Shown: positions 2,640 through 57,641 of the stretch, one piece after another
Position numbering within the stretch: position 1 is the first letter of the stretch
How the letters are laid out: each line of letters starts with the position of its first letter
Assembly: GCF_011386835.1 (NCBI RefSeq)
Contig: NC_088810.1
Span: forward strand, 24,738,001-24,802,000
Direction of reading: 5' to 3'
Origin: Chrysemys picta bellii
Lineage: Eukaryota
DNA: 64,000 bases
Translations under genes and position numbers: made by a program
The notes under the pieces: model-generated
What the model was told of the DNA's origin: nothing
Databases searched by the model: none
Seen by the model: the letters and a program-made list of their open reading frames with translations, nothing else

Positions 2640-2836
2640 CCCAGCCAAGGCGTCTGGGCAGCCTCTAATCAATTGATTCCCCCGGCTGGGAGGGCCGTGG
2701 GAGGGGAGCCGCCTGCAGGAAAAAGCCCTGGCCGCTGAGTGCGCCAGGCAGAAGTGTGCCAGCCGCCCGGAGAGCAGGGCCCCTCCACTGAGACCCAGCG
2801 CCGGGCACCGCACCCGCCTGCTGCCCCACAGTGAGT
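2640..2836 (+). promoter_or_regulatory. Candidate promoter and non-coding first exon of the SMAD6-like gene
   Basis: CpG-rich patch with palindrome AATCAATTGATT (2667-2678), ending in donor CA|GTGAGT at 2831. The coding exon has an acceptor (CCCCCCACAG, ending 5754) 16 nt before the ATG, so an upstream exon is needed. Assignment is inferred. Confidence 0.45.
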
Positions 2837-2939
2837 GAACCGCCCGCCCCACGGGCACCATCCCCTCCCCGCTTGGCCTCTTCCTGTGACACCCCAGCTC
2901 TGCCAACGGCCCCCAGCTGCCTTGCCTGGCACCTGGCGT

Positions 2940-3440
2940 ATGCGTGTCACTGTGTGCACGCGTGTTTGTGAGCATGTGCTCTGTGTGCGTGTCAGTGAGC
3001 ACTGTGCTGTGTGCGACTGCATGTTCACATATGTCAGGGCGTGTGCGTGCGCCAGGCGGTACATGTGTTAGGGTGTGTGTGCGTGTGTGTGTGCACACCG
3101 GGAGGCATGTGTGTCAGGACGTGTGTGTGTGTGTGCCAGGCACTACGTGTGTCAGGGAATGTGTGTGTCAGTGTGTGTGTGTGTGTGCGCCAGGCACGGT
3201 ACGTGTGTCAGGACGTGTGTGTGCCAGGCACTATGTGTGTCAGGGAATGTGTGTGTCAGGATGTGTGTGTGTGTGCGCGCGCACCAGGTGCGGTACGTGT
3301 GTTAGGAAATGTGTGTGTATACCAGGCACTACGTGTGTCAGGCACTACGTGTGTCAGGACATGTGTGTGTGTACCAGGCACTACGTGTGTCAGACATTAT
3401 GTGTGTGCGTGTGTGTGCCAGGCACTACGTGTGTCAGGGC

Positions 3441-3471
<31 letters not shown>

Positions 3472-3580
3472 CGCGCCAGGCACTACGTGTGTCAGGGCAT
3501 GTGTGTGTCAGGATGTGTGTGTGTGTGTGTGTACGCGCCAGGCACTCCGTGTGTCAGGCACTATGTGTGTGTGTCAGTGG
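2940..3580. repeat. TG-rich minisatellite
   Basis: Recurring GTGTGTCAGGCACTACGTGTGT units. Confidence 0.9.
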
Positions 3581-4149
3581 CTGTGTCTCTTGGGGTGTCT
3601 GGGTGGGAGGCCGCCCAGACCAGGCCCTTGTCCCTCCTCCCTGCCCCGTCTTTGGCTCCATTTCTCTCCTCCGCCCCCTCCCAGCCCCCCCACCCCCCGG
3701 CCATAAATGCAGCTCATCACAGGCTGGGTCACTCAGATCCCCACCTGGGGAACGGGAGGTATGTGGGGAAGGGGGGGCAGGTCTGGGGGCTGGTGAGTGG
3801 GTACCTGTGTGTCCCTGCCTGAGGGAGGGGTGCGTGTGCTGTGGGCATGGGGGGGTTTGCTCTCTCCCTGGGGGGTCAGCACGGGGACCAGGCCCCAGTC
3901 CCAGCCGGGGCGCTCTGCCCCTCGCAGGGCCTAGCTACACACTCCGAGTGTGGACGCAGCGCTAGCGGGTGGAGGTATCCCGTCAGGGAGGGGTGAGCTG
4001 GCTGGGCAGGAGGCCCCGTCACTCCAGGGGGACTGGCCCGTCCCTGCCCAGGGCTGCACCCGTCACTAGACCAGGGGAGCTGCCCTGGGCAGTGCTGGCT
4101 CTGGAGATGGCCAGCAACGCTCAGCACGGCCTAGGGGAGCTGCTGCGTG

Positions 4150-5200
4150 GGTGTCAGTGTGTGTGTGTGACGGGGAGCAGCAACGTGTGTGTGACTGTGT
4201 GTGTGACGGGGAGCAGCAACGTGTGTGTGACTGTGTGTGTGCTGCAGTGTGTGTCTGCACAGGTATCAGGGTATGTGTGTGTGACAGTGAGCGGCAGCGT
4301 GTGTGTGCTGCATTGTGTGTCTGCACAGGTGTCAGGGTATGTGTGTGTGACAGTGAGCAGCAGCATGTGTGTGACTGTGTGTGTGACAGTGAGTGGCAGC
4401 ATGTGTATGACTGTGTGTGCTGCATTGTGTGTTTGTACAGGTATCAGGGTATGTGTGTGTGACAGTGAGCGGCAGCGTGTGTGTGCTGCATTGTGTGTCT
4501 GCACAGGTGTCAGTGACTGTGTGTGTGACGGGGAGCAGCAGCGTGTGTGTGACTGTGTGTGTGACAGTGAGTGGCAGCATGTGTATGACTGTGTGTGCTG
4601 CATTGTGTGTCTGCACAGGTGTCAGTGACTGTGTGTGTGACGGGGAGCGGCAGCGTGTGTGTGACTGTGTGTGTGACAGTGAGTGGCAGCATGTGTATGA
4701 CTGTGTGTGCTGCATTGTGTGTTTGTACAGGTGTCCATGTGTGTGTGACAGTGAGCGGCAACGTGTGCGTGACTGTGTGTGTGACTGAGCGGCGGCGTGT
4801 GTGTGACTGTGTGTGCTGCATTGTATGTCTGCACAGGTATCAGGGTATGTGTGTGTGACAGTGAGCGGCAACGTGTGTGTGACTGTGTGTGTGACGGGGA
4901 GCTGCAGTGTGTGTGTGACTGTGTGTCTGCACAGGTGTGTCTGTGACTGTGTGTGCTGCATTGTGTGTTTGTACCGGTGTCCGTGAGTGTGTGTGTGAGA
5001 CAGTGAGCGACAATGTGTGTGTGACTGTGTGTGTGACAGTGAGCGGCAGCGTGTGTGTCTGTGTGTGCTGAATTGTGTGTCTGCACAGGTGTCAGGGTAT
5101 GTGTGTGTGTGACGGGGAGCAGTATGTGTGTGCACAGGTGTCAGTGACTGTGTGTGTGACAGGGAGCAGCAGATGAGTGTCAGTGTGTGGCAGTGAGTGT
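4150..5200. repeat. TG-rich minisatellite
   Basis: Recurring GTGTGTGACTGTGTGTGTGACAGTGAGCGGCAGC units. Confidence 0.9.
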
Positions 5201-5770
5201 GTCAGGAGTGAAAACTGGCCTCTCCATCGAATTCTCGGTTTGACTCTCAGGGTCTCTGGGGACGTGGCTGCCCGGTGGGTGCTGCTGAGGGGTGATGGGT
5301 GCAGCCCCTCCGCTCCCTGGCAGGACCAGGTGCCCCGCTGCATCATCGGGGGGTTCGTTCCTGCCCCAGCAGCGGGCGCCAGAGGTGCAGAATCCCTGGC
5401 TGGCCTCCGGTGCCACCGGCCACTGGCCAGCGCCCAGCATTGATCCTGCCCCCTTCACTCAGGCCCTGGGTGTTTGGATACAGACTCCCAGCCCAGCGGG
5501 CCTGGGGGAGCTCTGGGGGAGACCGGCTCAGCGGAGCCCCAGCCAGCCTGGCCTAGACGAGGCAGGCCTGGAGCAGGCCGACTCCCCCTTGGGGACCCCG
5601 GTGTCCGGCTGGATCCCTGCTATACCTGATGCCGGGGGGCGGGGGGGTGCAGGGCAATACCTGCTTACCCCAGGTGCGGCTGGGTGCCCTGGGCCTGGAC
5701 AGGCAGGGACATGGGACTCTGGAGCGGCACGTGACCCCTCTCTCCCCCCCACAGGTGGGCCCAGCCCCCC

Positions 5771-8700
5771 ATGTTCCGCTCGCGGCGGGCCAGCCTGGTG
5801 CGGCGTCTCTGGAGGCATCGCTGTGCCGGGCCCGGCCCCGAGGATGGGCACGGCGCCCTCAAACCCGCCGCTCACGCCCTCTTCAAGAAGCTGAAGGACG
5901 AGGAGCTGGAGCTGCTGGTGCAGGCGGTGGAGAACCGGGGAGCCGGGCCGTCGGGCTGCGTCTGGGTGGCCCGGGCAGAGCCGCGTGGCACCAAGCAGGC
6001 CCTGCCCCCTCAGGTGCTGCTCTGCCGGCTCTACCGCTGGCCCGACCTCCGGCACCCCCATGAGCTCAAGCGCCTGAGCTGCTGCCAGAGCTTCGGGGTC
6101 TGGGGGGGCTGCGGCGAGGGGGCCACACTCTGCTGCAACCCCCACCACCTCAGCCGGCTCGCCATGCCCGGTGAGTGGGACGGGGGGGCCGGGCTGGGGG
6201 CCCACCCATGGCGCACCTCGCCNNNNNNNNNNNNNNNNNNNNNNNNNNNNNNNNNNNNNNNNNNNNNNNNNNNNNNNNNNNNNNNNNNNNNNNNNNNNNN
6301 NNNNNNNNNNNNNNNNNNNNNNNNNNNNNNNNNNNNNNNNNNNNNNNNNNNNNNNNNNNNNNNNNNNNNNNNNNNNNNNNNNNNNNNNNNNNNNNNNNNN
6401 NNNNNNNNNNNNNNNNNNNNNNNNNNNNNNNNNNNNNNNNNNNNNNNNNNNNNNNNNNNNNNNNNNNNNNNNNNNNNNNNNNNNNNNNNNNNNNNNNNNN
6501 NNNNNNNNNNNNNNNNNNNNNNNNNNNNNNNNNATCTATCTANNNNNNNNNNNNNNNNNNNNNNNNNNNNNNNNNNNNNNNNNNNNNNNNNNNNNNNNNN
6601 NNNNNNNNNNNNNNNNNNNNNNNNNNNNNNNNNNNNNNNNNNNNNNNNNNNNNNNNNNNNNNNNNNNNNNNNNNNNNNNNNNNNNNNNNNNNNNNNNNNN
6701 NNNNNNNNNNNNNNNNNNNNNNNNNNNNNNNNNNNNNNNNNNNNNNNNNNNNNNNNNNNNNNNNNNNNNNNNNNNNNNNNNNNNNNNNNNNNNNNNNNNN
6801 NNNNNNNNNNNNNNNNNNNNNNNNNNNNNNNNNNNNNNNNNNNNNNNNNNNNNNNNNNNNNNNNNNNNNNNNNNNNNNNNNNNNNNNNNNNNNNNNNNNN
6901 NNNNNNNNNNNNNNNNNNNNNNNNNNNNNNNNNNNNNNNNNNNNNNNNNNNNNNNNNNNNNNNNNNNNNNNNNNNNNNNNNNNNNNNNNNNNNNNNNNNN
7001 NNNNNNNNNNNNNNNNNNNNNNNNNNNNNNNNNNNNNNNNNNNNNNNNNNNNNNNNNNNNNNNNNNNNNNNNNNNNNNNNNNNNNNNNNNNNNNNNNNNN
7101 NNNNNNNNNNNNNNNNNNNNNNNNNNNNNNNNNNNNNNNNNNNNNNNNNNNNNNNNNNNNNNNNNNNNNNNNNNNNNNNNNNNNNNNNNNNNNNNNNNNN
7201 NNNNNNNNNNNNNNNNNNNNNNNNNNNNNNNNNNNNNNNNNNNNNNNNNNNNNNNNNNNNNNNNNNNNNNNNNNNNNNNNNNNNNNNNNNNNNNNNNNNN
7301 NNNNNNNNNNNNNNNNNNNNNNNNNNNNNNNNNNNNNNNNNNNNNNNNATCTGTCTATCCCCAGAACTTGGCCCCCCTTGCCCTGCTGGTTTTGGGGCTG
7401 TTTTGGGCCGGAAGGGGAGGGCTGGCATCGGAGTGGGGTGGGGAGGGGGCTGCCCCGAGACAGCTGCTCACTGGTTTCTGCTCTTGTCTGGTTCCCTTTC
7501 AGAGACACCGCCACCCCCTTATTCCAAAATCTCCCCCTTCAGCTGCCTCTGGGCAGAGGTGTCGGAGCGCCCCAACTCCAGCCACCTGGAGTCTGGTTGC
7601 AATGCCCACGGAGACTGGCGAGGTACGGTGGGGACCGGGGCACAAGGGATGCCCATAGGGACTGGGGGGCACCCAGGGGATGTGACCCCCCAGGCCCAGG
7701 CGGGGAGCGTCAGGGGACTCCGAATGACCAGCCCTGGGCTGGGTGGGGACCAGTGTTGCCAGGCTACAGCCCTGGGTATCGAGGGGATCCTGCTGCCACC
7801 TTCCTCCCGCACGAGATTTTGGGGGCCCCACTGGGGAAGAAGGGCCCCTGGGTGGAGCCATCGAGAAGCCCCCCGCTCAGGAACCAGCAGCACCAGGTGT
7901 GGGTCAGGTGCTCCCCCTCCCCCGCTGAGCCATCCCAGCCGTCGGAGCCTGGAGAGCTGCCGACATGGGGCCCCTGGGGCCTGCTGGGCCCTCCCCTGCC
8001 GGCTCAGCCCTTTGCAGAGCAGGGGCCCAGCTGCGGGGCCCGGGGCTTCCCCTTCCGTAGGTCAGAAAGAGTTGGGGGGAGGGGCGGGGGGAGGTCTGCC
8101 CCCCCCAGAGCAGATCTGACCTTGCTGCTGCCCCCCATCTCCTCTGGGGCTTCAGGGGAAGGGGTTGGGGGGGTGATAACCACCCCCCGTCCCCCGAGTC
8201 AGGCCCCCCCACCTGAGCCCGGGAGGAAAAGCTGCGCCTGTTATTTTTGGCCCGTCCGCGTTCCCCGCCGCAGGAAGTGCTGCCCACAGGGACACTCACA
8301 ATGTGCCTTGACGCACAAGCCGCGCTCCGGCCTGGCTGCCGGCCACCGGCTCCTTCCCCACGCTCCACCCTCCCTCCCACGGCTCCAGGGCCTTGGGACC
8401 GGCGCCCTCTGCCAGGCCCGCCCCCCACTTGCCGCGCCACGGCGGGCGGTCCCCTGGGACGGTGGCTGGGGCCGTCCTAGGCCTACGTGCCGGCTCACAG
8501 CACCCCACCGTGACTCACGCCCCCGGGGATAGTCCGGCTCCGCGACGGAGTCGGACGCCCTGCTCCAGCCCAGCTGCCCCACAGTACCCCGGGGGGCTGA
8601 CCCTGGGGAGCTGGGAGGTCCGTCTGCTTGGGGCCAGCGGGGTCAGGCAGCCAGAACCCCAGGAGGGCCAGCAGAGATGGGGCCTGAAACTGGCCCTTGC

Positions 8701-10145
8701 AGAGCCCAGGCCCCGTTGCCCACCCGCCCCCCACTGCTGGCCGGGCCCAATTTCAAGCTGGAGCATTCAGGCTGGCCTGCCGCCAGCCCCCAGCCACTTG
8801 AAAGAGACGCAGGGGCCTCCTCCGCTGCTGGGGCTAAACTGGTTCTGTATCCAGAGCCCCGCAGCTCACCCATGGCCAGTGCCAGGCAAGGGGTCCCTGC
8901 ATAACCAGCCCCCGTGCCCCACCCCAGAGCCAGCTGCCTCTCCACACCAGGTGAGGGGTCCCTGTTTAACTAGCCCTCACGTCCCCATCCCCCCCACAGC
9001 CAGTGCTGGGGGAGGGGTCCCTGCATAACCAGCCCCCGTGCCCCACCCCAGAGCCAGCTGCCTCTCCGCACCAGGTGAGGGGTCCCTGTTTAACTAGCCC
9101 TCACGTCCCCATCCCCCCCACAGCCAGTGCTGGGGGAGGGGTCCCTGCATAACCAGCCCCCGTGCCCCACCCCAGAGCCAGCTGCCTCTCCGCACCAGGT
9201 GAGGGGTCCCTGTTTAACTAGCCCTCACGTCCCCATCCCCCCCACAGCCAGTGCTGGGGGAGGGGTCCCTGCATAACCAGCCCCCGTGCCCTACCCCAGA
9301 GCCAGCTGCCTCTCCGCACCAGGTGAGGGGTCCCTGTTTAACTAGCCCTCATGTCCCCCCGCCCCAACGGCCAGTGCTGGGGGAGGGGTCCCTGTATAAA
9401 CACCCCTGCGTCCCACCCCAGAGGGGCTGCATCCCAGCACCGGGCGAGGGGTCTCTGTATAACCTGCCCCCCACACCCCACCCCAGAGGGGCTTCATCCC
9501 AGAGCCAGGGAGGGTCCCTGGGTGGTCTATTCATTCTCTGGGGGCTCAGTGGGGGGGTCTGGGGGCTGCTCTGTGCATGGGCTCAGAGGTTCCCTTCTCG
9601 CTCCTGCAGACCCCGGCCTGGCATGGAGCACCACCAGGGACGGCTGCTGGTGCAAGTTGGCCTATTGGGAGCACCGGACACGGGTGGGCCGTCTCTACGC
9701 CGTGCACGAAACCTCCGTCAACATCTTCTGCGAGCTGCCGCAGGGGAGCGGCTTCTCCCTGGGCCAGCTGCAGGCCGAGAGGCGCAGCGCGGCCGTACGC
9801 CGGGCCCGGAGCAAGATCGGCCGCGGGCTGCTGCTGAGCCGGGAGCGGGACGGGGTGTGGACCTACAACCGCAGCGAGCACCCCATCTTCGTCAGCTCTC
9901 CCACGCTGGGGCCCCCCAGCGCCCGCGGCCCACCCGTGCACAAGGTGCTGCCCGGTTACTCCCTGCAGGTCTTTGACTATGAGCGCGCGGGTGGCCAGGC
10001 CGGCTGGCGGAGGCCGGGCGATGGGCCCTGCGACCCCAACAGCATCCGCATTAGCTTCGCCAAGGGCTGGGGCCCCTGCTACTCGCGGCAGTTCATCACC
10101 GCCTGCCCCTGCTGGCTGGAGATCCTGCTCACCAAGCCCCGCTGA
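5771..10145 (+). CDS. SMAD6-like inhibitory SMAD (I-SMAD paralogue), 351 aa; coding exons 5771-6170, 7503-7622, 9610-10145
   Basis: Exon 1 encodes [15 protein letters not shown]...[20 protein letters not shown]...[10 protein letters not shown] (I-SMAD N-domain). Exon 2 carries the PY motif ETPPPPYSK. Exon 3 encodes an MH2 domain ([19 protein letters not shown]...[33 protein letters not shown]) closer to SMAD6 than SMAD7, with no C-terminal SSXS. All junctions are GT-AG and phase 1-1; total 1056 nt. An N gap lies in intron 1. Confidence 0.93.
6223..7348. other. Assembly gap or masked run (N), probably an (ATCT)n microsatellite
   Basis: N run with an island ATCTATCTA (6534-6542); sequence resumes with ATCTGTCTATC. 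Confidence 0.85.
8885..9400. repeat. 124-bp tandem repeat, ~4 copies, in the last SMAD6-like intron
   Basis: CCTGCATAACC starts at 8896, 9020, 9144 and 9268. Confidence 0.95.
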
Positions 10146-10669
10146 GCCGGGGCCCAGCCCAGCCGCTCCCGCTGCGGCCACGGGCCCTGCCAGCCGACTG
10201 GAGTGGGAGAGCGTCCTCGGGCCCCCCACCGCTGAGGCCTGGCCCAGCAGCCTCTGCCCCTCTGCCTAGAAACCCTATTGCAGCCTCCCTCTGCCCGACC
10301 CAATCATGGCCTCTGGGCCTCTCCAGCCATCCCCAGCCCGGGCGCTACGGCCCTGGTCAGCCCCTGTCTGCCCCACTCCCGCTGGCCTGCCCCCCAGCTT
10401 CCTCCCCCGCACCTCTTCCCCTTATCTCCAGCCCCCCATCCCCGTCCCTCTGGCAATCCCACCCCCCTGTCCTCCCCCAGCCCCACCCCATCCCTCTGCC
10501 CCCACATCCCTTCCCCACCCCATCTCCCTTTACCCCCAGCCCCCGTCCCTCTGCCTTCCCCCAGCCCCTGCCCTGTGGTGTCGGACACGCCTGGCAGGGA
10601 GGCAGTGGTGGGGGACTGGGCGGTTCTCACATTTATTTCAAATTATCTTATTTTTGTAAAGAAAAGTAG

Positions 10670-10675
10670 ATTAAA
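10670..10675 (+). terminator. Candidate polyA signal (ATTAAA) of the SMAD6-like gene; alternative AATAAA at 11438-11443
   Basis: ATTAAA at the end of an AT-rich island (10631-10680) about 530 nt after the stop codon. Confidence 0.4.
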
Positions 10676-11829
10676 AATCTGCAAGTGCGGGGGAGCGGCT
10701 CCATGTGCCAGCCTGACCCCCTGCCCACTTGCCAGCTGATCCATTCTGGCACTGGCCCAGGGGGTAGCCGGTCTCAGCCCCCGCTGGGAGCCTGCTGGGC
10801 TGAGCTGAGCTGGGCTGGGCTGGGCTGGGCTGAGCTGGGCTGGGCTGGGCTGGTTAGGGGTTTCGAGGTTGAGAGGGTCTGAGCACGTCTGCAAAGGTGG
10901 GGAGGAGGTGAAGCAGGAGGAGGTAGCAGTGGGGGCAGGACTCAGCACAGGGCGAATTCTTGGCCCTGGGGGCTCTGCCCAGGGCCCGATCCCCAGGGCT
11001 CAGAAGGATCCTGGTAGCCTCAGAGCTTGGGCTTTGGGGTGTGGGCTCAGAGGCTGGTCTGTGCATAGGGGGAGGCACAGAGAGTGGGGAGAGGCTGGGG
11101 GGCAGCTCAGAGCTGGCAGAAGAAGCCAGCAGGGCTGGGGGTGGCCAGCAGCAGCCAAAGCCCCCGCGTTAGGAGGGCTCCGGGGCTGGGGGGGGAGTTC
11201 TCATGACTGGCAGAGTGTCCTGCATGCAGCAGACAGCACCGGGCCCAGCCTGGCAGGGCAGAGGGGCAGTGCTGCAGGTTCCCCCGCAGTGCAGACCCAG
11301 ACCTGGCCATCTCCGCAGCCAGCCCTGCTGGGCACAGGGGCCCTGCTGGAGTCGGGCCGGGCCGGCACCGGTGTTGCATGAGGAGCTCTAAGTTCTTCCA
11401 GCCACATGCCTAGCCCGTCGCTGTTATTTATAACTCCAATAAACGGTGCCACCGAATCGCTGCTGCCAAGCGTTGTCCCTGCGCCGGACCCACCTCCTGT
11501 GCCCAGCGCATGGGGAGCTGCAGCGCCGCCCGGGGCGGGGGGGAGCTCGATAACCACCGTGGCAGTTGGCGAGGAGCCAGCCCCCCCAGTGCTGGGTGCT
11601 ACAGGTATTGTCCCATCACAGCTGGGTCTGGGTGTGGGGCAGGGAGGGACCCCAGCCTGTGGGCACCAGGCCTCCCTTAGAATTGGGGCTGGGGGTGGGG
11701 GCCTTCCTGCCATGGCTCTGATATGCACCCCCACCCCAAACACCGGCACCACCACATCACACACCATGGCCCCACAGCGGGTTCGCTGGGCAGCCCAGCC
11801 CGGTGTGCCACACGCATGTCCATGCACCC

Positions 11830-12255
11830 CTCACAGGCCAGCATGCACACGCATGGGCACACACACACGTATGTACAGCACCCCTGCACACACATACATA
11901 TACCCCCCTGCGCACACACACACGTACATGCACCCCTGCGTGCACACATGTACATACACCCGTGCGCGCGCACACACACGGGCACCCCTGCGCACACACA
12001 CACACACACCCCTGCGTGCACACACACACACACACACGTGCACCCCTGTGCGCACACACACACACATGTGCACCCTGTGCACGCACACACACACGCACAT
12101 GCACCCCTGCGCACACATTCACACACGTACATACACCCCTGTGTGCACACGGGCACGGGCACCCCTGCGCGCACGCACACACACACACATGTGCACCCCT
12201 GCGCACACTCGCACGGGCACCCCTGTGCGCACGCACACACGCACACACACACACG
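11830..12255. repeat. CA-rich minisatellite
   Basis: Recurring GCACCCCTGCGCACACACAC. Confidence 0.9.
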
Positions 12256-15200
12256 TGCAGCCCATGCCGGCTCCCCTTTGCACGCCGGCTCCGAAGCGCC
12301 TCTCCCCGGTCGGTGCCCAGCAGTGCCCTCTGCAGGCCAGAACAAGGCAGCGCCGCCCGCAGCTGTCGGCAATGACCGCCCGGTCCTTCCTGCCACGCTG
12401 CCCGGCTGGGCAGAGATGGGATCAGAGGCTCCCTGCCCTCAGGCTGGCCCCACTGCCCTCAGGCGTCTGCATCTCTGCTGTGCTGCCCAGCGCCCCGGAG
12501 GGCTGTGTCCTGGGGGGGCGGAAGGTGAGTGCCCGGCGATGCCCCCGCCTGCCCTGCTCGGGGCCCCTGGGAATGTCCTGGGCTGAGTGGGGACAGGGCA
12601 CCTGCAAAGCGACTTCCCAGCTCCCTCATGCTGGGGCTGAGCTGGGGGTGCCAGCCACCGCCCCAGGGTCTGCGGTGGGGGGCACGGCCAGACGAGGGCT
12701 GAGCTGGGGGTGCCGGCTGCACATGGGTGGTTTGGGGGCTCTGGCTGACAGGCTCGCCCGTGGCAGCAGAGACGGGGATGGGCCCAGCCCCCGTGCCACA
12801 TAGCCACAGCCCCGCACCCCAAAATAGACCAGTGCCTAAAAATAGCACCGCGCAACCCCAACAGGGGAAGGGGGTTGGTATCTGCCAGCCTGCACTGGGG
12901 CGAGGGCGGGGCGCCGGGGGGCTGTGTGGTTTGGTGTCTGGTTCCTAGAACACTAGGGGCTGCGGGCTCAGCAAGACCTGGGGGGGCCAGGGGGGAGAGA
13001 CTCTTTCCTATAAACACGCGCCAATCCAGCCCACGGGGCTTGCAGAGAAGCCGCCCGACTTAGAGAAAACCGGGGGAGGGGGAGAGAGAGCGAGGGAATG
13101 GGGAAGCGAGGGAGGAGGAGTGCGGCCTTGCCAGCTGTGAGCACTTCCCCCTACTACTCGCCGGAGCCAGGGGGTGTTGGGGGGGTGCCCGCCCAGCGCC
13201 CAGGCCTGACTCCCAGCAGCCAGCAATGGGCTTGGCTGGCACCATCTGCAGCGGGGAGGCCAGGGCAAAAGGGGGGCCGGACGCTGTCCCTGGCCTCTTG
13301 CTCTGCAGTGGAATCTCTCCATCCAGTGCTGGGCTCCCACCCCCATGGGCTCTGGCACCTGAACTGGGCTCCCCGGTAGCCCTGGGTGCCGCCCTATGTG
13401 GAAGTGGGAGGCCGTGGGCCAGGTCTGAGCTGATGCAGGGAGCTGGGGGCTCCTGCCCCTCCTGCCGGTTCCTCCTTAGAACCATTTCCCCTGCGGCGTC
13501 TATAAATAGCTGGCGACGCCGGGGCCTGCGGTGGGTTTGATTTCGGCTCTTGGCGGCCTCAGGGGGTTTGTGACACGAAGCACTGGGCGCCTTTCATCCT
13601 CCGAGCTGCCTCTGAAGTGGTCGGGGTGCAGGAAGGCTCGGAAGCTCCCCCCACCCGTCTGACGCCCCCAGGAGCCGGCTGGGACATGGATGTCTCTGCA
13701 CAGCAGGGTCTGCGCCTCTGCATCCCATTTCCCAGGGTGTGGTGCCCCCCACCCGGCCCATGGGGGCCAACGGTGACCAGCCCTCAGCGGGCCTGGGCCA
13801 GGCTTGCCTGGCATTGCCCAGCGCCTGGCACCTTAGGCCCGTGGTGGCCCTGATTCCAGGATCGTTCCAGGGACCAGGGCTGCCAGCCACATCCTGGCCC
13901 CCCAGCCCCCCCCACCTCCCTGGGGTGCAGCTGCACGGCCCCTGAAAGTGAAAGTGGGAGGGACCGTGGGAGGCTGGTTTCGGGCAGGTGGGCGGCTGGG
14001 CCGGCTGCAAGTCAGCACCAAAGAGGGGATTTTCTTTGGATTTCCCCCTCACTCGCCTCATCCGTCCCCACGCGTCCCCAGCTCCTCAGCAGCCCCCTCC
14101 CCTGCTTCCCTGCTCAGGCCAAGGGGGGACAGCAGCCAGGCTGGGCCAGGCAGGCCACTCCCTGGAGGTACCCCAGCTCTCGCCAGGCCCCCGGGTGGCT
14201 CCTGGCTAGCTCCCTCTGCCCCCCTCCCCAGCATGTGGGTTACTGTAAGCAGAGTGCCAGGGCTTTGCGGAGCAAGGGGGAGAGGGAGGGAGGGATGAGC
14301 AGATGGACCAAAGCTCCTCTCGCTCTCTCTGGACAATGCAGAGGATTTGCCCTGGTGGGGGGGGAGGAATGTGGGAGGGGGCGCGGGCAGGGCCAGGCAC
14401 CTCAAGGCCATCGCCCCAGAGGACAGGTTTGCAACCCTCCCCCACCCCACTGGGGACACACCCAAGGGCTGAACCCCCTTGTCGGGTCAGCAGCCAGGTA
14501 TGTGCAGGGTAATTGCCCCAGCAGGAGGGATGACCCGGCCCTGGATCTGTGCCCACTGGAATGGGCTCTGGCGGCAGTGATCCGGCAGCAGGGGAGAGCC
14601 GGAGCTGGATCCCTGCCCCCGGAATGGACTTGCCTCCTGCCAGTGAGCTAATGTCTGTACAGAGCCCCTGTTTGGCTTGGCGGCTGGGCAGTGGGGGCCT
14701 GGCCCAGGGCCATGTCTGAATCAGGCCGCCAGGGAGCCCCTCCTTGGAGCAGCAGGCGGGGGCAGGGGGTGGAGGGCAGGGGCGGGCGGGCGGGTGGGTG
14801 GGGTGAGCTGAGGTGAGCAAGGAGCCAGGAACATTTTGATTCTTTCCCTCCTGGGCACCGGTTGTGGCCAAACAGGTTGTGCCTGTGACCCCACCCGAGT
14901 CACCTGCGCAGGTGGGGGGAGCTGCTGCTCGGGGAGTCTGCCCCACCCTGGCCTGCCTTGCCCTCCTGCCTGCTCTGAGTGTCTCGCTTTACATGAGCCC
15001 CCATCGCCCTGGGGCCTTCCTGCCACTCTCCCAGGTGGGCACAGGGAAGGGAGGCTGGTGAGGCGAGTGTACTCGGGTGGATACCCCTCTCCCATCACCT
15101 CAGAGTCCTCCCTGCCCCCGGAGGAAGCGGGGCCTGGGCTATACCTCCGAGTTCACATCACCACCTCCATGCAGCGAGCTGGGGCTGGGGGACATCACCC

Positions 15201-15440
15201 AAGGCCACCCAGTGACTCTGGCAGACAGGGTTAGAACCCCGGAGTCCTGGCTCCCAGCCCCTCTGTTCCAGCCCCCTAGGCCCCCCTCCCCTCAAAGAGC
15301 CAGGGACAGACCCAGGAGTCCTGGCTCCCAGTCTTGTGTTCTGACCCAAATCCATCTTCTTCTCTCAGTGCCTCAGCCCGCATGCTGGGTTCCCTGTTGG
15401 CTGCGTAGTTATGCCCAGGTGCAGGTGAGACATTTGGACA

Positions 15441-15603
15441 TTGTTTGCCAGGAGCTGGGAATGGGCGACAGGGGATGGATCACTGGATGATTCCCTGCTC
15501 TGTTCATTCCCTCTGGGGCACCTGGCACTGGCCCCTGTCGGAAGACAGGATACTGGCCTAGATGGACCCTTGGTCTGACCCAGTAGGGCTGTTCCCATGT
15601 TCT
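15441..15603 (+). mobile_element. CR1 3'-UTR fragment
   Basis: Closely matches 40470-40629 (GCTGGGAATGGGCGACAGGGGATGGATCACTGGATGATTCCCTG...ATGTTCT). Confidence 0.85.
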
Positions 15604-15789
15604 GACAAGCAGGGCCCAGGGCGTGGGGCTGGGAGTGAGCGAACCGGTTTTCCAGCTGGCTGACACCGATGCTGCCCAGAGAACAGCCAGTCAGGTGGGG
15701 GCGGTGGGGAGGGAAAGCGTCCCCCATTCTGGCTGTGTCAGTGCCTCAGGGCTTTGGCTGGTGCGGTGACAGAGCACGAGGAGCGATTA

Positions 15790-16300
15790 GATGGGTCTAT
15801 GTGGGGATGGCTGGAGGGAGGGGCAGAGGGATCTGTGTGGGGATGGACAGATGGAGGGCGGGACGGACAGAGGGCAGGACAGAGGGATCTGTGTGGGGAT
15901 GGACGGATGGAGGGAGGTACGGACAGAGGGATCTGTGTGGGGATGGATGGACGGAGGGAGGGACGGACAGAGGGATCTGTGTGGGGAGGGACAGACGGAG
16001 GGAGGGACAGAGGGATCTGTGTGGGGAGGGACGGACAGAGGGAGGGACAGAGGGATCTGTGTGGGGATGGACGGACAGAGGGATGGATGGACGGACAGAG
16101 GGAGGGACAGAGGGATCTGTGTGGGGAGGGACAGACAGAGGGATGGATGGACAGACGGAGGGCGGGACAGAGGGATCTGTGTGGGGATGGATGGAGGGAG
16201 GGAGGGAGGGACGGTCAGAGGGATCTGTGTGGGGATGGACGGAGGGAGGGACAGAGGGATCTGTGTGGGGAGGGACGGACGGAGGGAGGGACGGTTGGAC
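15790..16300. repeat. Purine-rich minisatellite
   Basis: Recurring GAGGGATCTGTGTGGGGATGGACGGACAGAGGGAGGGACA. Confidence 0.9.
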
Positions 16301-16348
16301 GGAGGACAGCCAGGGCAGGGCGCCCGGGAACAGCCCTCCCCCCTGCTC

Positions 16349-16453
16349 TAGGGTTGCCAATTTCAGTTCGACGTGTTCCTGGAGGTTCCGTCACGTGACA
16401 TAAGCTTTAAGTCCTGGAGACTCCAGGCCAGTCCTGGAGGGTTGGCAAGCCGC
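16349..16453. mobile_element. ~105-bp MITE-like element (TAGGGTTGCCA...TGGCAACCCTA-type termini)
   Basis: Imperfect TIRs; a homologous copy lies in the opposite orientation at 27699-27802. Confidence 0.6.
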
Positions 16454-16659
16454 GGGAAGCGGCAGCCGCCACAGGCCGGGCCTTTGGGGGTGTCCAGTTC
16501 CGGGGCTCCCCGGCCAGGCCGGCCCCCCCAGTCGAGAGCCGGGCCAGGGACGGGTCATCCTTTCCAGCTGCAGCCTCCTTCCCCAGCGCCGTGACTCACC
16601 TTCCTCCCCGCCCGCCCTCGCCTGGCCCGAGTCCCGCCCTGCGGCCGCCGCCCCTCCCG

Positions 16660-17450
16660 GGCCGGGCCCCCCGCCCGCACTGCGAGCCCCCCCCCCATCC
16701 CGGGCCGGGCCCCCCCTCCCGCGCTGCGAGCCCCCCCCCCATCCCGGGCCGGCCCCCCCGCCCGCACTGCGAGCCCCCCCATCCCGGGCCTGGCCCCCCC
16801 CCCCGCACTGCGAGCCCCCCCCCCATCCCGGGCCGGGACCCCCCGCCCGCACTGCGAGCCCCCCCCCATCCCGGGCCGGGACCCCCCGCCCGCACTGCGA
16901 GCCCCCCCCCATCCCGGGCCGGGACCCCCCGCCCGCACTGCGAGCCCCCCCCCCATCCCGGGCCGGGCCCCCCCGCCCGCACTGCGAGCCCCCCCCCATC
17001 CCGGGCCCCCCCGCCCGCACTGCGAGCCCCCCCATCCCGGGCCGGGCCCCCCCGCCCGCACTGCGAGCCCCCCCCCATCCCGGGCCGGGCCCCCCTGCCC
17101 GCACTGCGACCCCCCCATCCCGGGCCTGGCCCTCCGCCCGCACTGCGAGCCCCCCATCCCGGGCCTGGCCCCCCGCCCGCGCTGCGAGCCCCCCCCCCAT
17201 CCCGGGCCTGGCCCCCCGCCCGCGCTGCGAGCCCCCCCCCCATCCCGGGCCTGGCCCCCCCGCCCGCGCTGCGAGCCCCCCCCCCCCCCCCGGCAGGGCC
17301 CCTCCGCACGCGCTGCGAACCCCCCCCCCCCATCCCGGGCACGGCCCCTCGCCACCGCTGCGACCCCCCCCCCATCCCGGGCACGGCCCCTCGCCACCGC
17401 TGCGAACCCCCCCATCCCGGCCACGGACCCCCGCCCGCTAGCGCTACGAG
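16660..17450. repeat. GC-rich VNTR (~18 units of ~40-44 bp) upstream of the ZBTB7B promoter
   Basis: Unit CCGCCCGCACTGCGAGCCCCCCCCATCCCGGGCCGGGCCCC. Confidence 0.95.
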
Positions 17451-17559
17451 CCCCCCCCAAGGGAGCGGTGCAGCTTTAAGGGACCCATTAGCCAGGGGGG
17501 GGGGACCCTAGCGGCCGCTGCTGCAGACACTGTCATCCCCCCCTCCCCCGCCAGCTCCT

Positions 17560-18031
17560 CCCCCCGCCCCTGAGAGGTGTGTCCTGGGGGGGCCCTGAAG
17601 GGCAGCACCCCCCACCAATGAGAGGCTGGGAACCCACCCCCTGCCCAATGAGCTGGGGAGGGGGCGGGCGCTTCCTGGTAGCAGGTTTAGGAGGGCGAGG
17701 GGGAGATGCTGAGCGGCTGGGGCCAGGTGGAGGGGAGGGGTCGGGAGGGGATCGGGGGGGCCCGGCCGGCGGAGGGGCGCGCAGCGACGGGGGCAGGCAG
17801 GAGGGGAGGGGCCTGGCTGCGGCTAGGCGGGGCTGGGGGGCCGCTGGGGGTAGGACAGGTGGGGGGCGGGGCGGGCCAGGTGAGGTGGGGACCGCGGGGG
17901 GCGGGGCGGGACAGGTGAGTGAGGTGGGGAGAGCGCAGGGGCGGGCAGAACGAGGGGCCCCTGGCGTCCGGCCCCCAGCGGAGCGCACCGACCCCGCCTG
18001 CTGCACCTGAGCCGAGCGGAGACCGGTGAGT
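17560..18031 (+). promoter_or_regulatory. Likely ZBTB7B distal CpG-island promoter and non-coding first exon
   Basis: CpG island ~16.4-18.7 kb; CCAAT at 17615 and 17645; several GGGCGG boxes; strong donors CAG|GTGAGT (17915) and CCG|GTGAGT (18026). The ZBTB7B coding exon has an acceptor 9 nt before its ATG (exon starts 38879), so an upstream exon is required. Confidence 0.55.
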
Positions 18032-21000
18032 CCTGCGCCTGGAGCTGCCTGGAGCCCCCGGGTGGGAATAGCTGGGGGGGTCCGGGTGCCCCGAGCCCCA
18101 TTAGCGTCCCCCTTGGTGCCCTGGCTCCTATCACCCCCCTCCCCCGCCCTAGCTCGGGTCCCTCCCTGGACCCCGCCAGGTGCGTCGTGGTCCCTTCAGT
18201 GGAGCCCCCCCCTCGCAGCCCCCATCACCCCCCGGGGAGGGCTGCCTTGGGCCGGGAGCAGGCCTGGTTGGTGGCTCAGGTCTGGGGTTATAAATAACCC
18301 TCCTTAAGCTGGTAGGTGAGTGGCAGGGATGGTGTGTGTGGCCCGGCCTGGCCCGGCTCGGCCTGGCCGGGGGATCAGAGACACCGGCTCCGTAGATCTG
18401 CGCTGTCTGGGCTGCCTGGGCCCCGGCTAGCCTGGCCGGTGCCCCTCGGGGCTGTTGGCAGCTCCCTGCGGAGCGTCAGCTCAGCCGCCGGCTGGGTAAA
18501 GGGCGGCCCGGGCTCCACCGGGCGCAGCTCCCTTGGCGCGCTGGGGGGCGGGAATGGAAACCCTGAGTGCGCCCGTGGGGAGCGGCAAGTTACGGCGAAT
18601 GTGGACACGTCGCCAGGCCGCTGGCTCTAGCTCTCCTGGAAGCTGCGGGTGGGCAGGGTGCCAGGCGGGAGGGGAGGGGTGGGGTGGATTACTCGTCGCA
18701 TCCCCTGCGCTGGCCGCGTCTGGGTGGGGGAGTCTGACTGCTAATGGGCTAAACTGGCAGGGGTGGGGAGAGGGACCGCGGTTCCTGGCATGGGTTGCTG
18801 TGTCCGGACGGGGCAGCGATGGAGGGGGCTGTCGCCAGGCTAGAAACTGGGTGTGGTGTGAGCTAAGCAGACCCCCCCCCCACACACACACACCCACATG
18901 CTATCTGGGGGGTGGCCTGCTCAGGCGTTGGGGCTCTTCCTGGCCAAGCTCCCCCCACCCCATGGCTGGGGAGGCCCCTGGGAGGACAGTCTGATCCGGC
19001 CCTTTCTGGGTCCTGTTTGCCTCTGCCTGGCTTCCGACCCAACAGTAACAAACCTGGTGAGCGCTCACCCCCTCTCTGTGTCCCGCTGGGCACAGGGCCC
19101 CTTGCCCTCCGGTGTCCTGGCCACTCTGATGGCCAGCGGGTGGCCCAGGGGAGCAGTCTCCCCGGGGGCCAGCAGAGCGGGGAGGAACTGGGTGATGCTG
19201 TCACCTGCAGTAGACTAACGCCTGTGGCACTTGAACTAGGCCCTGCACTGAACCGAAGACCCTCCCCCCGACCATCACTTAGCACATGTGATCTACTTTG
19301 TTTGTGTAGGGCCTACAGTAAATGGGGGGAGGGGGGGTTGTCTGGCTGTCCCTCAGCGAGGGAACGTTCCGTGGAAGTGTCACCTGTCCCTGAGTGGAAG
19401 GAGGCCTCATTGGGAAGGGATCATCCACCCCTCCCCGCCCTCATTAACGCTTATGTATCCCAGGATGACCGTGTGTGTCTGGCATGGGGGTTCTTGGGGC
19501 ATCTGGGTCAGACTCTGCTCCGGGGGCCGCCTGCCGGGAATCTGGTGCCCCATCATTCTCACCTTGCTCTGAGGCTGCTGGACTCTGCCCTGAGTGTGCC
19601 CAGCCCTTGGCAACTGTTCCCACCCGAGCCGGCCGCCCCTGGCCACGGTGTTTACCCAGGGGGTGGGGCGCGTATTTACCCTCCCAACACTGTCTGGGCC
19701 ACAGCGGGATGACGAGCAGCTGCTGTCTCAGGGCTGAAGCTCCCCTTGACCTGCTGGGATCTCCCTTCCCAGGACAGCTCCTGCTGGCACGCGGCTCCTG
19801 TGCTGGGCCGGAGTCCCAGGGGTGTTCTCATGGCTAGTGCCTGGGACTCCTGGGTTCTCGCCTGGCTCTGGGAGGGGAGTGGGGTCTAGTGGGTGGAGCT
19901 GGAAGCCAGGACTCCTGGGTTCTCGCCTGGCTTTGGGAGGGGAATGGGGTCTAGTGGCTAGAGTGCAGGGGGCGGGAGGACTCTCGGGTTCTACTTCTAG
20001 CTTCTGACACTGCGGCTTTGGGCGGCGAGTCCTTTCCTGGCTCTGCCTCGGTTTCCCCCTCCCTAATAGGGAATCGACTCCTGCTGAGAGTGGGGCAGGC
20101 AGGCTGCTGCACTCTGGCGCCTCCGGGTTCTGCCTGCTCGCCATCCAGGGGCGTGCCTATCGGCTGTCCCCGCGTGGGGCCCCCTCCTGGGCCCCTCACT
20201 GGGCTGGCATCCCGTGGGCACAGAGCTGTGGAAAGGGGAGGGGGCCTTGCGGGTCTCTCTGGAGGCCTGGATGGCCGTGTGTGAAGAGGGCGGGGGCACG
20301 GCTGGGGAAGTGTCCGCGGGTTGGAAGGGGAGGCGGTGCTCTGCAGGGCCTTGAAAGGCAGAACAAGGCGCTTGAGCTTGGTGTGGGGGAGAAGGCAGCG
20401 CTAGAGGGCCCTGGGGGTGGGGGGGAGGCTGGGTAGGAGGGCTGGGGGGGAGGTGGGCTGTATCTGCAGAGGGGTGCATCGGCCAAGGCAGGAGGCGCCG
20501 CTGGCTGTGTGGAGGGGCAGGTGTGGGGTGGGTGAGGCGTGAGCGATGGGGGTCAGGCCGGGAGGCAGTGCTGCTTGGCCCCCTGGCTGGTGTGTTCCTG
20601 GGAGTTCGGTGGCACTGGCCTTGCTGTGCTGGCAGTGCCCTGGGGAGGCTCTGAGATCCGGAGGGTATTTGGGGGGGGGGTCTGCCGAGGACGCCCCCAG
20701 CAGCCCGGGGAGTCCCAGCTGCATCACACAGGGGGCTGAGCAATGGGATTTGGAGCCGTTCCCTGCCCAGCGATGTGATGTGAGACCCAGGGAGTGCACC
20801 TGGGCCCCAGCTCCTCCCAACACCCCCTGCATCCATGACCCCTGGCTGGGGGCACCCTCTGCATCATGGGGTGCATGGAGAGCCCCGTGTGCTGGTGCCC
20901 TGGGCGCCCTCCCCAGCTGAGCGGGGTGCAGCAGGAGGTGGTCAGTGGGCCAGAGGGGCCCAGCCTGGTCCGGCCTGGCGGCGCTGGGTCTCAGAGGGGC

Positions 21001-22754
21001 AGGGGCTGCTGCCATGCCCAGCCCAGGAACCTCTCCCCCAGCAGGAGGGGGTGGATGATGAAACCACAGAGAAATCGCTGCTGGTAGCGTGCTGGAGCCC
21101 CGGGAGCCCACACCGTGCCTTGGGGCCTGCCGTAGTAACCTTGGCGTGCTGGGGGAGGGGGGCTCCAGCTTTGGGGGGATGGAGTTCCAGGAGTCGCGTG
21201 TGGGGGCGGGGGCAGAACTGAGTCTGGATGTGATGGGTGACTCCTTCGTGCTCCCCTGTGGGGGGCAGAGTGAGCCCCATTGGGCCAAGGGGACAGCATG
21301 ACATGTCCCTTGCTGCAGCGAGATGGGGCATCCTGGGGGCGGGGCGCCCACACGGGTCTCTGGAGTCAGGTGCTGGGCTCTGAGGTCCTGCAGACGATGG
21401 GTCTCGGCTGGGACTGGGGGATTTCTCCCTGCTGCGGGGGCCCAGGCTTTAAGGTCACTTGTGCTAGGGGGCCAGGCTGAGACCCAGCCAGCAGGAGGTG
21501 CCTGGTGCCCATTCGGGGAGCCCCAGGGAACCGCTCCGTCCACCCCTCTGAGGCTGGTGACCTTCAGCTCCTGTGGGGAGGCGCTGAGCCGCTCATGGTG
21601 TCCCTGCCCTGCCCATGTGCATTCTTGGCACCTTCTGGAGCTGCTGGGCCTTGGAGCCCCACGTCCCCAGGGAGCAGCCGGCGTGACTTGGCCGGGTTCC
21701 CCTGGCGGGTGGGCGGGCGGGGGGGGACCAAGCTGCGGGAGGGAAAATGAAAGCAGGTGATGCGGAAGGAGAAGTAGGTCAGGCGAGCTCTGGCCTCTCC
21801 CGGCAGGCAGGCTCAGGGTGTGCATGCGTTGCTGCTGCCAGCTTGTCCCTGCTGCTCCAGCCCCGGGCCCCGATGGGCAGCGCCTGGCAAGCGTGGTGAG
21901 TACTTCTCTGTGCGCTGCCCCTCTGGGCGGGGTCCTTCTGCCCAGGGCCACCCCCCCTTTCTGGGCACTGTCTCCTCCCAGCCTGCAGCCCAGGCACTGA
22001 TGTCAGGCTGGGCTCATCGGTGGCTCCCCCAGGGCTCCCGGTGAGGGGTGCTAGCTCTGCTCCCCGGCTGGCTGCTCTTGCTCCAATCCTCTCCTACTCC
22101 ATGTTCCCCCGGAGGGTCAGGCGTGGGGGGGGTCTTATCCAGTCTGACCCTGAGCCCCCTTCCGTGTGTCCTGGCTGATCGCCGTGGGGGAGCAGGGCCT
22201 GACCCCAAGCGAGCTCCTGAATCCAGGCACTGCTCTGTGCTCCACCCCCTGGGTGTCCTCCCCCCACCCCCAGCCTGGAGCTGCCCAGGACCCCTCCGCT
22301 CTGTGCACCGCTGGGTGGGAGCAGAGCCTTTGCCCAGGGCAGGGAGTAGCGTGAAGGAAGGTGCCTTGCTGGGCTTCCCCATCTCCAGGTGACCCAGTGT
22401 TGGGGAGACCTGCCCTGGCAGAGCTGGGTGGGAGGGAGCTGGCGAAGGCCCCCGGTGCTGGGAGCCCCTGCTGGCAAGGGGGAGCAGAGCTCGGGGACAT
22501 CCTGCTGCGCAGCACCTGTCCACGCTGTCCTGTGGCCCTGATGCCTCCCTGGTGCCGGCGGGGGGACAGCCGCAGGGGCAGCAGCACTGGCTATAAGCCC
22601 CCCCTCGCCCCCCCGTACTCAGGGTGCTGCAAGGACATTAGAGTCCTCTCCTAATTAGTAATAATTAACCCTGCACAGAGGGGTCGATGGGAAGGAGGTT
22701 TAGCAGAAGCGTGTGGGACTGCAGAGGAAATGAGTCCCCCCCCACCCTGGGCGG

Positions 22755-23135
22755 CAGGGCTCAGCAGGGGGCGCTCTCCCCTGGCAGTGCTGGCCCCAGT
22801 GCAGGGCTAGGGGGCGCTGTGCTGCAGGGAGCGGGTGGGGGCTCAGCAGGGGGCGCTCTCCCCTGGCAGTGCTGGCCCCAGTGCAGGGCTAGGGGGCGCT
22901 GTACTGCAGGGAGCGGGTGGGGGCTCAGCAGGGGGCGCTCTCCCCTGGCAGTGCTGGCCCCAGTGCAGGGCTAGGGGGCGCTGTACTGCAGGGAGCGGGT
23001 GGGGGCTCAGCAGGGGGCGCTCTCCCTGGCAGTGCTGGCCCCAGTGCAGGGCTAGGGGGCGCTGTGCTGCAGGGAGCGGGTGGGGGCTCAGCAGGGGGCG
23101 CTCTCCCTGGCAGTGCTGGCCCCAGTGCAGGGGGC
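22755..23135. repeat. 82-bp tandem repeat (~4.6 copies) carrying CTCF-like motifs
   Basis: TCAGCAGGGGGCGCT at 22761, 22843, 22925, 23007 and 23088. Confidence 0.95.

Positions 23136-44593: not shown

Positions 44594-57641
<13,048 letters not shown>

Follow-up and report, generated by a model that had tools for sequence, protein, structure and literature searches.

The inhibitory SMADs (I-SMADs) SMAD6 and SMAD7 bind activated type I receptors through the L3 loop and a basic groove of the MH2 domain, and recruit SMURFs through a PY motif (PMC7589189). Their N domains tune specificity and localisation, and that of Smad7 strengthens inhibition of the TGF-beta (transforming growth factor-beta) receptor (PMC2150897). 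Zheng et al. (2018) described a duplicate, named 'SMAD6B' and attributed to vertebrate whole-genome duplication (2R), that forms a clade apart from SMAD6A, is older than tetrapods and has members in coelacanth, Xenopus and squamates (PMC5979292). The smad6b of teleosts is a different gene: like teleost smad6a, it is a copy of canonical SMAD6 with linkage to SMAD3, in its case to SMAD3b (PMC11110936). In chicken, SMAD7B is a second SMAD7 locus, with an identity to SMAD7A of 93% in nucleotides and 98% in protein (Vargesson and Laufer, 2009; PMC2663054). Here we describe a SMAD6-like gene of the turtle Chrysemys picta bellii, located in a stretch of 64,000 nucleotides (contig NC_088810.1, positions 24,738,001 to 24,802,000 of the forward strand; hereafter the window). 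Very probably, it is the turtle copy of an ancient third I-SMAD that is intact, is spliced as predicted, evolves under purifying selection, resides at a FLAD1-ZBTB7B locus and is predicted to act by the I-SMAD mechanism. The gene is already annotated in RefSeq as 'SMAD6-like' and the paralogue was published in 2018, and hence the turtle locus is a confirmation rather than a discovery.

The gene comprises three coding exons on the + strand (Table 1), which together give an open reading frame (ORF) of 1056 nt (400+120+536), that is, 351 codons plus the stop. Searches and Pfam scans were run exon by exon, with the RefSeq protein XP_005280691.1 (P0461, Chrysemys picta bellii, 351 aa, 'mothers against decapentaplegic homolog 6-like') standing in for the full-length product. 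The exon translations match this protein exactly, at residues 1, 135 and 175: exon 1 corresponds to residues 1–133, exon 2 to 135–173 and exon 3 to 175–351, while the split codons at the two junctions, GAG (E) and GAC (D), also agree. Exon 3 recurs at 100% identity in two UniProt models from Chrysemys picta bellii, which identifies the window as painted turtle. One database model from the same genome (P0002) runs past the exon 1 donor into the intron, and was not used.

Expression of the gene is apparent from two transcripts. A transcript contig of 1538 nt from the public run SRR27880531 (L008) derives from a Mauremys-like turtle and has an uninterrupted ORF of 351 aa, which differs from the Mauremys protein at 1–2 residues. 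It splices 6170 to 7503 and 7622 to 9610, as in the predicted gene model. A bird transcript (L009) is likewise spliced at the predicted junctions, with an uninterrupted ORF of 343 aa. The turtle contig also bears on two assembly gaps in intron 1, which start 52 nt past the donor and stop 154 nt short of the acceptor. Because this mRNA contig joins exactly the exons of our model, the gaps leave the reading frame untouched. Moreover, the alignment to canonical SMAD6 runs without a gap across the junction of exons 1 and 2. The orthologous intron 1 of Trachemys measures 650 nt, and the part corresponding to the gapped region 447 nt, against 1130 positions here. The written gap length is therefore probably too large, as judged from this comparison of lengths.

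The encoded protein has the hallmarks of an I-SMAD. Exon 1 encodes an N-terminal MFRSRR..LVRRLWR motif and an MH1-like domain (Pfam MH1, 89 bits, profile positions 3–102 of 103), exon 2 a linker with the PY motif (PPPPY at residues 136–140, within TPPPPYS), and exon 3 the MH2 domain (PF03166, 166 bits, profile positions 3–173 of 174). The N domain is divergent but includes the I-SMAD motif MFR..RRLWR and aligns to the N-terminus of SMAD6. The C-terminus reads ...EILLTKPR, without the SSXS motif for receptor phosphorylation. Its place among the I-SMADs is further supported by the searches, in which the nearest representatives were all I-SMADs, whereas SMAD4 and SMAD2/3 reached only 75–87 bits. 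The best match of the MH2 domain among solved structures was Smad7 MH2 (7CD1, 202 bits). Compared to this structure, the L3 loop keeps its K and R, and the RSK stretch has R and K in place of two lysines, so that all four positions are basic. We take these RSK-stretch and L3-loop positions to be the basic-groove residues of Smad7. The N-terminal motif, the SMAD6-type L3 loop and a C-terminus without SSXS are conserved throughout the clade, from sharks to birds. The PY motif is present in sharks, lungfish, caecilians, turtles and birds.

Canonical SMAD6 of Chrysemys (P0399, 467 aa, SMAD3-linked) shares 56% identity over 324 aa with the window gene, and 56–60% across our comparisons. Common to both are MFRS..RRLWR, an MH1-like domain with CRLxRWPDL and CCNPxH, a PPPPY linker and the lack of an SSXS tail, and their L3 loops are identical or nearly identical. 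Yet the window gene lacks the ~140-residue insert that separates the N-terminal motif from the MH1 domain in canonical SMAD6, has a different linker, evolves faster, belongs to a separate clade (100/99), and resides between FLAD1 and ZBTB7B rather than beside SMAD3. Turtle SMAD7 (P0573) likewise displays I-SMAD architecture, with a PY motif and the K/R positions of basic groove and L3 loop. Identity to SMAD7 is only ~50%, and the N domain differs. The first-pass annotation, made from the sequence alone, had proposed an intact third I-SMAD of 351 aa with a SMAD6-type MH2 domain and without the long N-terminal insert. The gene model, both Pfam domains, the exact RefSeq match, the transcript junctions and the MH2 residues all bear this out.

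Phylogenetic analysis separated the window gene from both known I-SMADs. In a tree of the MH2 domain only (72 rows, 179 columns, careful search), canonical SMAD6 (95/94) and SMAD7 (100/100) were recovered, as were the tetrapod SMAD6-like members (100/98) and those of sharks and rays (100/98). The SMAD6-like lineage as a whole was a clade in the best tree, with weak support (48/89). Support was much higher in the full-length tree (52 rows, 355 columns; without shark or cyclostome SMAD6/7), with values of 100/99 for the SMAD6-like lineage, 100/99 for SMAD6, 100/100 for SMAD7 and 100/99 for invertebrate I-SMADs. Within the SMAD6-like lineage of the full-length tree, sharks and rays branched first, then coelacanth plus lungfish, and then tetrapods. 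The clade lies outside canonical SMAD6, which includes teleosts and sturgeon, and outside the SMAD7 and invertebrate clades. Because sharks fall inside it and invertebrates outside, its origin must be ancient: the lineage is older than the split between cartilaginous and bony vertebrates, which fits the vertebrate whole-genome duplications.

The clade includes Latimeria (XP_006003378), Xenopus, lizards and snakes, and thus has the same taxa and topology as the 'SMAD6B' of Zheng et al. (2018). Most probably, therefore, the turtle gene is this 'SMAD6B'. Turtles, birds, crocodilians, sharks, lungfish and bichirs are not listed in their survey (PMC5979292).

An alternative explanation might be that the gene is a duplicate of canonical SMAD6 that arose in tetrapods or sauropsids and lost the N-terminal insert. 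Its name and its identity to SMAD6 of the same species would be in line with such an origin. The clade, in contrast, contains sharks, rays, coelacanth and lungfish, its genomic position is conserved among turtles, crocodilians and birds, and trees in which tetrapod SMAD6-like and tetrapod SMAD6 sequences were held together were 55.8 log-likelihood units (lnL) worse (p = 0.0012 in the approximately unbiased test, p-AU). Duplication within tetrapods was thereby rejected, and we consider a lineage-specific duplicate very improbable. Since joining the tetrapod copies is rejected, the gene is not nested in canonical SMAD6. Orthology to canonical SMAD6 was also discarded as a candidate, given the position outside the SMAD6 clade, the FLAD1-ZBTB7B locus and the presence of a separate SMAD6 in the same species. 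The first-pass annotation, which had named nesting among the SMAD3-linked SMAD6 orthologues as evidence against an ancient paralogue, is upheld in this respect.

It had also suggested that the gene might be the one called SMAD7B in chicken. Both are 'extra' inhibitory SMADs of sauropsids, yet they are unrelated. Chicken SMAD7B is nearly identical to SMAD7A and groups with SMAD7 (PMC2663054), whereas the turtle gene falls outside the SMAD7 clade and differs from turtle SMAD7 at about half of its residues. Nothing beyond the earlier guess speaks for this identity; it was rejected, and the chance that it is correct is in our view negligible.

More difficult to settle is which of the two known I-SMADs is the closest relative. 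The trees are compatible with either SMAD6 or SMAD7 as the sister of the SMAD6-like clade. The best full-length tree pairs the clade with SMAD6 (82/57), but a topology with SMAD7 as sister was only 0.2 lnL worse (p-AU 0.39), and for the MH2 domain alone it was 2.4 lnL better than the free search (p-AU 0.56). Among the 34 columns of the MH2 domain with one fixed state in SMAD6 and another in SMAD7, the turtle gene agrees with SMAD6 at 22 and with SMAD7 at 2, and differs from both at 10. At first sight this points to SMAD6, as the first-pass annotation had it when calling the MH2 domain SMAD6-like. However, 17 of the 22 SMAD6-type columns match the invertebrate majority. Their 'SMAD6-like' appearance is therefore largely retained ancestral character, with SMAD7 being the divergent one. 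SMAD7 has a long stem in our trees (0.55–0.74). The description of the residues thus stands, while the sisterhood with SMAD6 that it might imply is not singled out by the trees.

These results leave some room for a reading in which SMAD7, and not SMAD6, is the 2R sister of the gene. Its adjacency to ZBTB7B would then mirror that of SMAD7 to ZBTB7C, and the names 'SMAD6-like' and 'SMAD6B' would be misnomers based on ancestral residues that were retained. The near equality of the topologies, the ancestral nature of most SMAD6-type columns and the long SMAD7 stem are all consistent with it. Against it are the pairing in the best full-length tree, the higher identity to SMAD6 (60%) than to SMAD7 (50%), and four or five diagnostic columns that the gene shares with SMAD6 and not with invertebrates. 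The linkage of ZBTB7C and SMAD7 is, moreover, one that we presume, and we count this against the reading too. On balance, we regard it as possible but rather doubtful.

The SMAD6-like lineage is widespread. A search of the protein database with the MH2 exon gave 120 matches at 266 bits or more, typically 335–370 aa long and usually named 'SMAD6-like', from turtles, many birds, alligator, squamates, caecilians, frogs, coelacanth, lungfish, sharks, rays and skates. No mammalian or teleost orthologue was found among these 120 matches, a result that applies to the protein database, as the mammalian locus itself was not examined. The searched database contained more than 80 mammalian SMAD6 entries, and canonical rodent SMAD6, at 255 bits in comparison, fell below the 266-bit group. 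Among the matches from metagenomes and run assemblies, the sole exception was a mammal-type fragment of canonical SMAD6 at the ~266-bit level (P0111); the others were bird-, squamate- or amphibian-like. The first-pass annotation had proposed an ohnologue kept in sauropsids and lost in mammals. Its great age and the lack of a mammalian member in the protein-database search agree with our findings, but its retention extends well beyond sauropsids, to amphibians, lungfish, coelacanth, cartilaginous fishes and bichirs.

Bichirs (P0147, Erpetoichthys; P0429, Polypterus) have very divergent members, with branches of ~1.0–1.2 substitutions per site. We saw no other members from ray-finned fishes, and the position of the bichir proteins inside the clade was unstable. 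The SMAD6 copies of tilapia are named smad6aa/6ab. Some database entries can mislead homology lists of this kind. A model from Pitangus (P0149) is probably chimeric, with a SMAD7 MH2 domain and a half that matches reverse-transcriptase-like bird proteins; as a query, it still retrieved full-length SMAD7s. An entry from Acipenser sinensis (P0294) looks chimeric as well, with very high scores against both SMAD6 and SMAD7 queries, and another from this species (P0049) has a score that is unusually high for its identity. The latter two carry contamination flags in their own names.

Our results also show that the gene is maintained by purifying selection. Pairwise ratios of nonsynonymous to synonymous substitutions (dN/dS; Nei-Gojobori counts per exon, then summed) between the window gene and six orthologues were 0.069 (Trachemys), 0.164 (Chelonia), 0.244 (Pelodiscus), 0.219 (Alligator), 0.229 (Calonectris) and 0.146 (Xenopus laevis). 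The linker exon was less constrained than the MH2 exon in the four comparisons in which the linker aligned. Protein length was invariably 351 aa in twelve species of cryptodiran turtles and in the pleurodire Pelusios. One might argue that the gene is a decaying or untranscribed relic, whose intact ORF arose by chance in GC-rich sequence. The window has a GC content of ~68% with many long chance ORFs, and the gene evolves faster than SMAD6 and SMAD7. Low dN/dS, the fixed length, Pfam scores far above threshold and spliced transcripts in turtle and bird led us to reject this explanation, which is extremely unlikely. Selection and transcription, both of which the first-pass annotation had required of a functional gene, were thus found.

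The genomic neighbourhood provides a further line of comparison. In Trachemys and Chelonia the SMAD6-like gene follows FLAD1, in the shearwater Calonectris the order is SHC1, CKS1B, FLAD1 and then the SMAD6-like gene, and in alligator CKS1B and FLAD1 precede it and a BTB/zinc-finger gene follows. In the softshell turtle Pelodiscus, too, the SMAD6-like gene is followed by a BTB/zinc-finger gene. In the window, a ZBTB7-type gene is located downstream (Table 1), with the BTB domain of ZBTB7A as its closest solved structure (152 bits). The position next to ZBTB7B that had been assigned from the window sequence is thereby corroborated: the gene lies between FLAD1 and a ZBTB7-type gene. This arrangement matches the order that we presume for human 1q21.3, SHC1-CKS1B-FLAD1-LENEP-ZBTB7B. 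In Xenopus, no genes were called within 10 kb of the orthologue.

Table 1. Coordinates (window positions) of the SMAD6-like gene and its downstream neighbour.
Feature	Coordinates	Strand	Remarks
Non-coding 5' exon (5' UTR)	2790..2830	+	Donor GTGAGT at 2831; L008 bases 5-48 align to 2790-2833
Coding exon 1	5755..6170	+	16 nt of 5' UTR, ATG at 5771; donor GTGAGT at 6171; ends in phase 1; L008 39-461 aligns to 5747-6170
Intron 1	6171..7502	+	Visible donor and acceptor bound both N stretches, 6223-6533 and 6543-7348
Coding exon 2	7503..7622	+	Acceptor AG 7501-7502; donor GTACGG at 7623; linker with PPPPY; L008 461-581 aligns to 7502-7622
Intron 2	7623..9609	+	Holds a 124-bp tandem repeat
Coding exon 3	9610..10520	+	Acceptor AG 9608-9609; MH2; TGA 10143-10145, then 3' UTR; L008 580-1530 aligns to 9608-10520
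ZBTB7-type gene, coding exons	38879-39895, 40875-41291	+	Pfam BTB (95 bits) and C2H2 fingers; taken to be ZBTB7B

At the 5' end of the gene, splicing from the donor at 2831 to 5755 (acceptor AG 5753-5754) reproduces the junction sequence of the turtle contig. The 3' end of the 5' UTR exon is thus fixed at 2830, whereas the transcription start may be located further upstream; the bird transcript aligns as well, at 2667-2730, near this exon. The 3' UTR extends to at least 10520, with an ATTAAA near 10662. A GT-rich minisatellite block (4134-5202, periods of 36, 112, 178 bp and others) is located ~570 nt upstream of the ATG, in the intron that separates the 5' UTR exon from coding exon 1, and gives rise to spurious long His/Thr-rich ORFs. 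The tandem repeat in intron 2 (8875-9463) has 4.8 copies of its 124-bp unit with 93% matches, and each unit carries a donor-like site, CAG|GTGAGG. Trachemys has fewer units, and one stretch of its locus (L001 12459-12695) aligns to three places in the window.

Further downstream, in Pelodiscus, the BTB/zinc-finger call begins ~2.8 kb past the stop of the SMAD6-like gene, in a region (L005 15746-16634) that aligns to window positions ~12200-13200. This spacing suggests that the two genes are tight tandem neighbours on the same strand, which might share regulatory DNA. The collinear Trachemys assembly (L001 13646-13657) lacks a segment of ~14.6 kb that immediately follows the gene (window 10431-25011, including a GC-rich part at 16–18 kb). 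Chelonia (L007) and Pelodiscus (L005) both have this segment in collinear order, and the likely cause is that Trachemys has undergone a deletion or that its assembly has collapsed here. An element flanked by long terminal repeats (LTRs) occupies 52008-56042 and includes an ORF of 900 aa (52806-55505) with matches to SCAN, zinc-knuckle and integrase zinc-binding domains. A match to the LTR of this element was also seen near FLAD1, where the Trachemys locus begins (L001 1-459, 94%).

How might this third I-SMAD work? Its MH2 domain, with the L3 loop, the basic groove and SMAD6-type residues, would dock on activated type I receptors, probably those for bone morphogenetic proteins (BMPs). The PY motif in the linker would recruit SMURF-type E3 ligases, and a protein without a C-terminal SSXS motif presumably cannot be activated itself. 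The product would then restrain BMP/TGF-beta signalling inside the cell, as a compact brake without the long N-terminal insert of canonical SMAD6.

Several points weigh against this interpretation of the gene. Its role as a compact, BMP-biased feedback inhibitor is predicted from homology, which concerns both the activity and the BMP preference, and our literature search found no functional study of the SMAD6-like paralogue. A bipartite BMP-response element (GGCGCC-N5-GTCT, or a looser form) was either absent near the gene or present as a single distant copy at chance level. The PPxY motif of the linker is lost in anurans (Xenopus, Bombina, Spea) and in Lacerta (P0091, P0430, P0098, P0100 and P0103, Lacerta included), and hence SMURF recruitment does not extend to all members of the clade. 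The gene also evolves much faster than SMAD7, with an identity between turtle and lungfish of 60% versus 90%. The equivalence with 'SMAD6B' was derived from the agreement in taxon composition and topology, and not from accessions. Likewise, an origin in the 2R whole-genome duplications is suggested by the timing of the lineage and by a paralogy of 1q21-like and 15q22-like regions that we assume. In addition to its linker, the Xenopus orthologue also differs in its C-terminal tail.

Nevertheless, we consider an ancient third I-SMAD the best description of the turtle gene. More tentatively, and with less than even confidence, one may regard this third I-SMAD as equal in rank to SMAD6 and SMAD7 rather than as a SMAD6 duplicate, perhaps even as the sister of SMAD7 with an ancestral linkage of I-SMAD and ZBTB7 genes. 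If so, it would have its own specificity for receptors and partners, as a compact brake without the insert, and SMAD6 and SMAD7 would have taken over its duties when it was lost independently in mammals and in teleosts.

The gene would also be a clear-cut example of an ohnologue that mammals have lost. Textbooks, which are based on mammals, list two I-SMADs, whereas most other jawed vertebrates have a conserved and transcribed third one. Since chick and Xenopus are standard models for BMP signalling and limb development, an unrecognised extra brake on BMP/TGF-beta signalling could confound knock-down and feedback experiments in these species.

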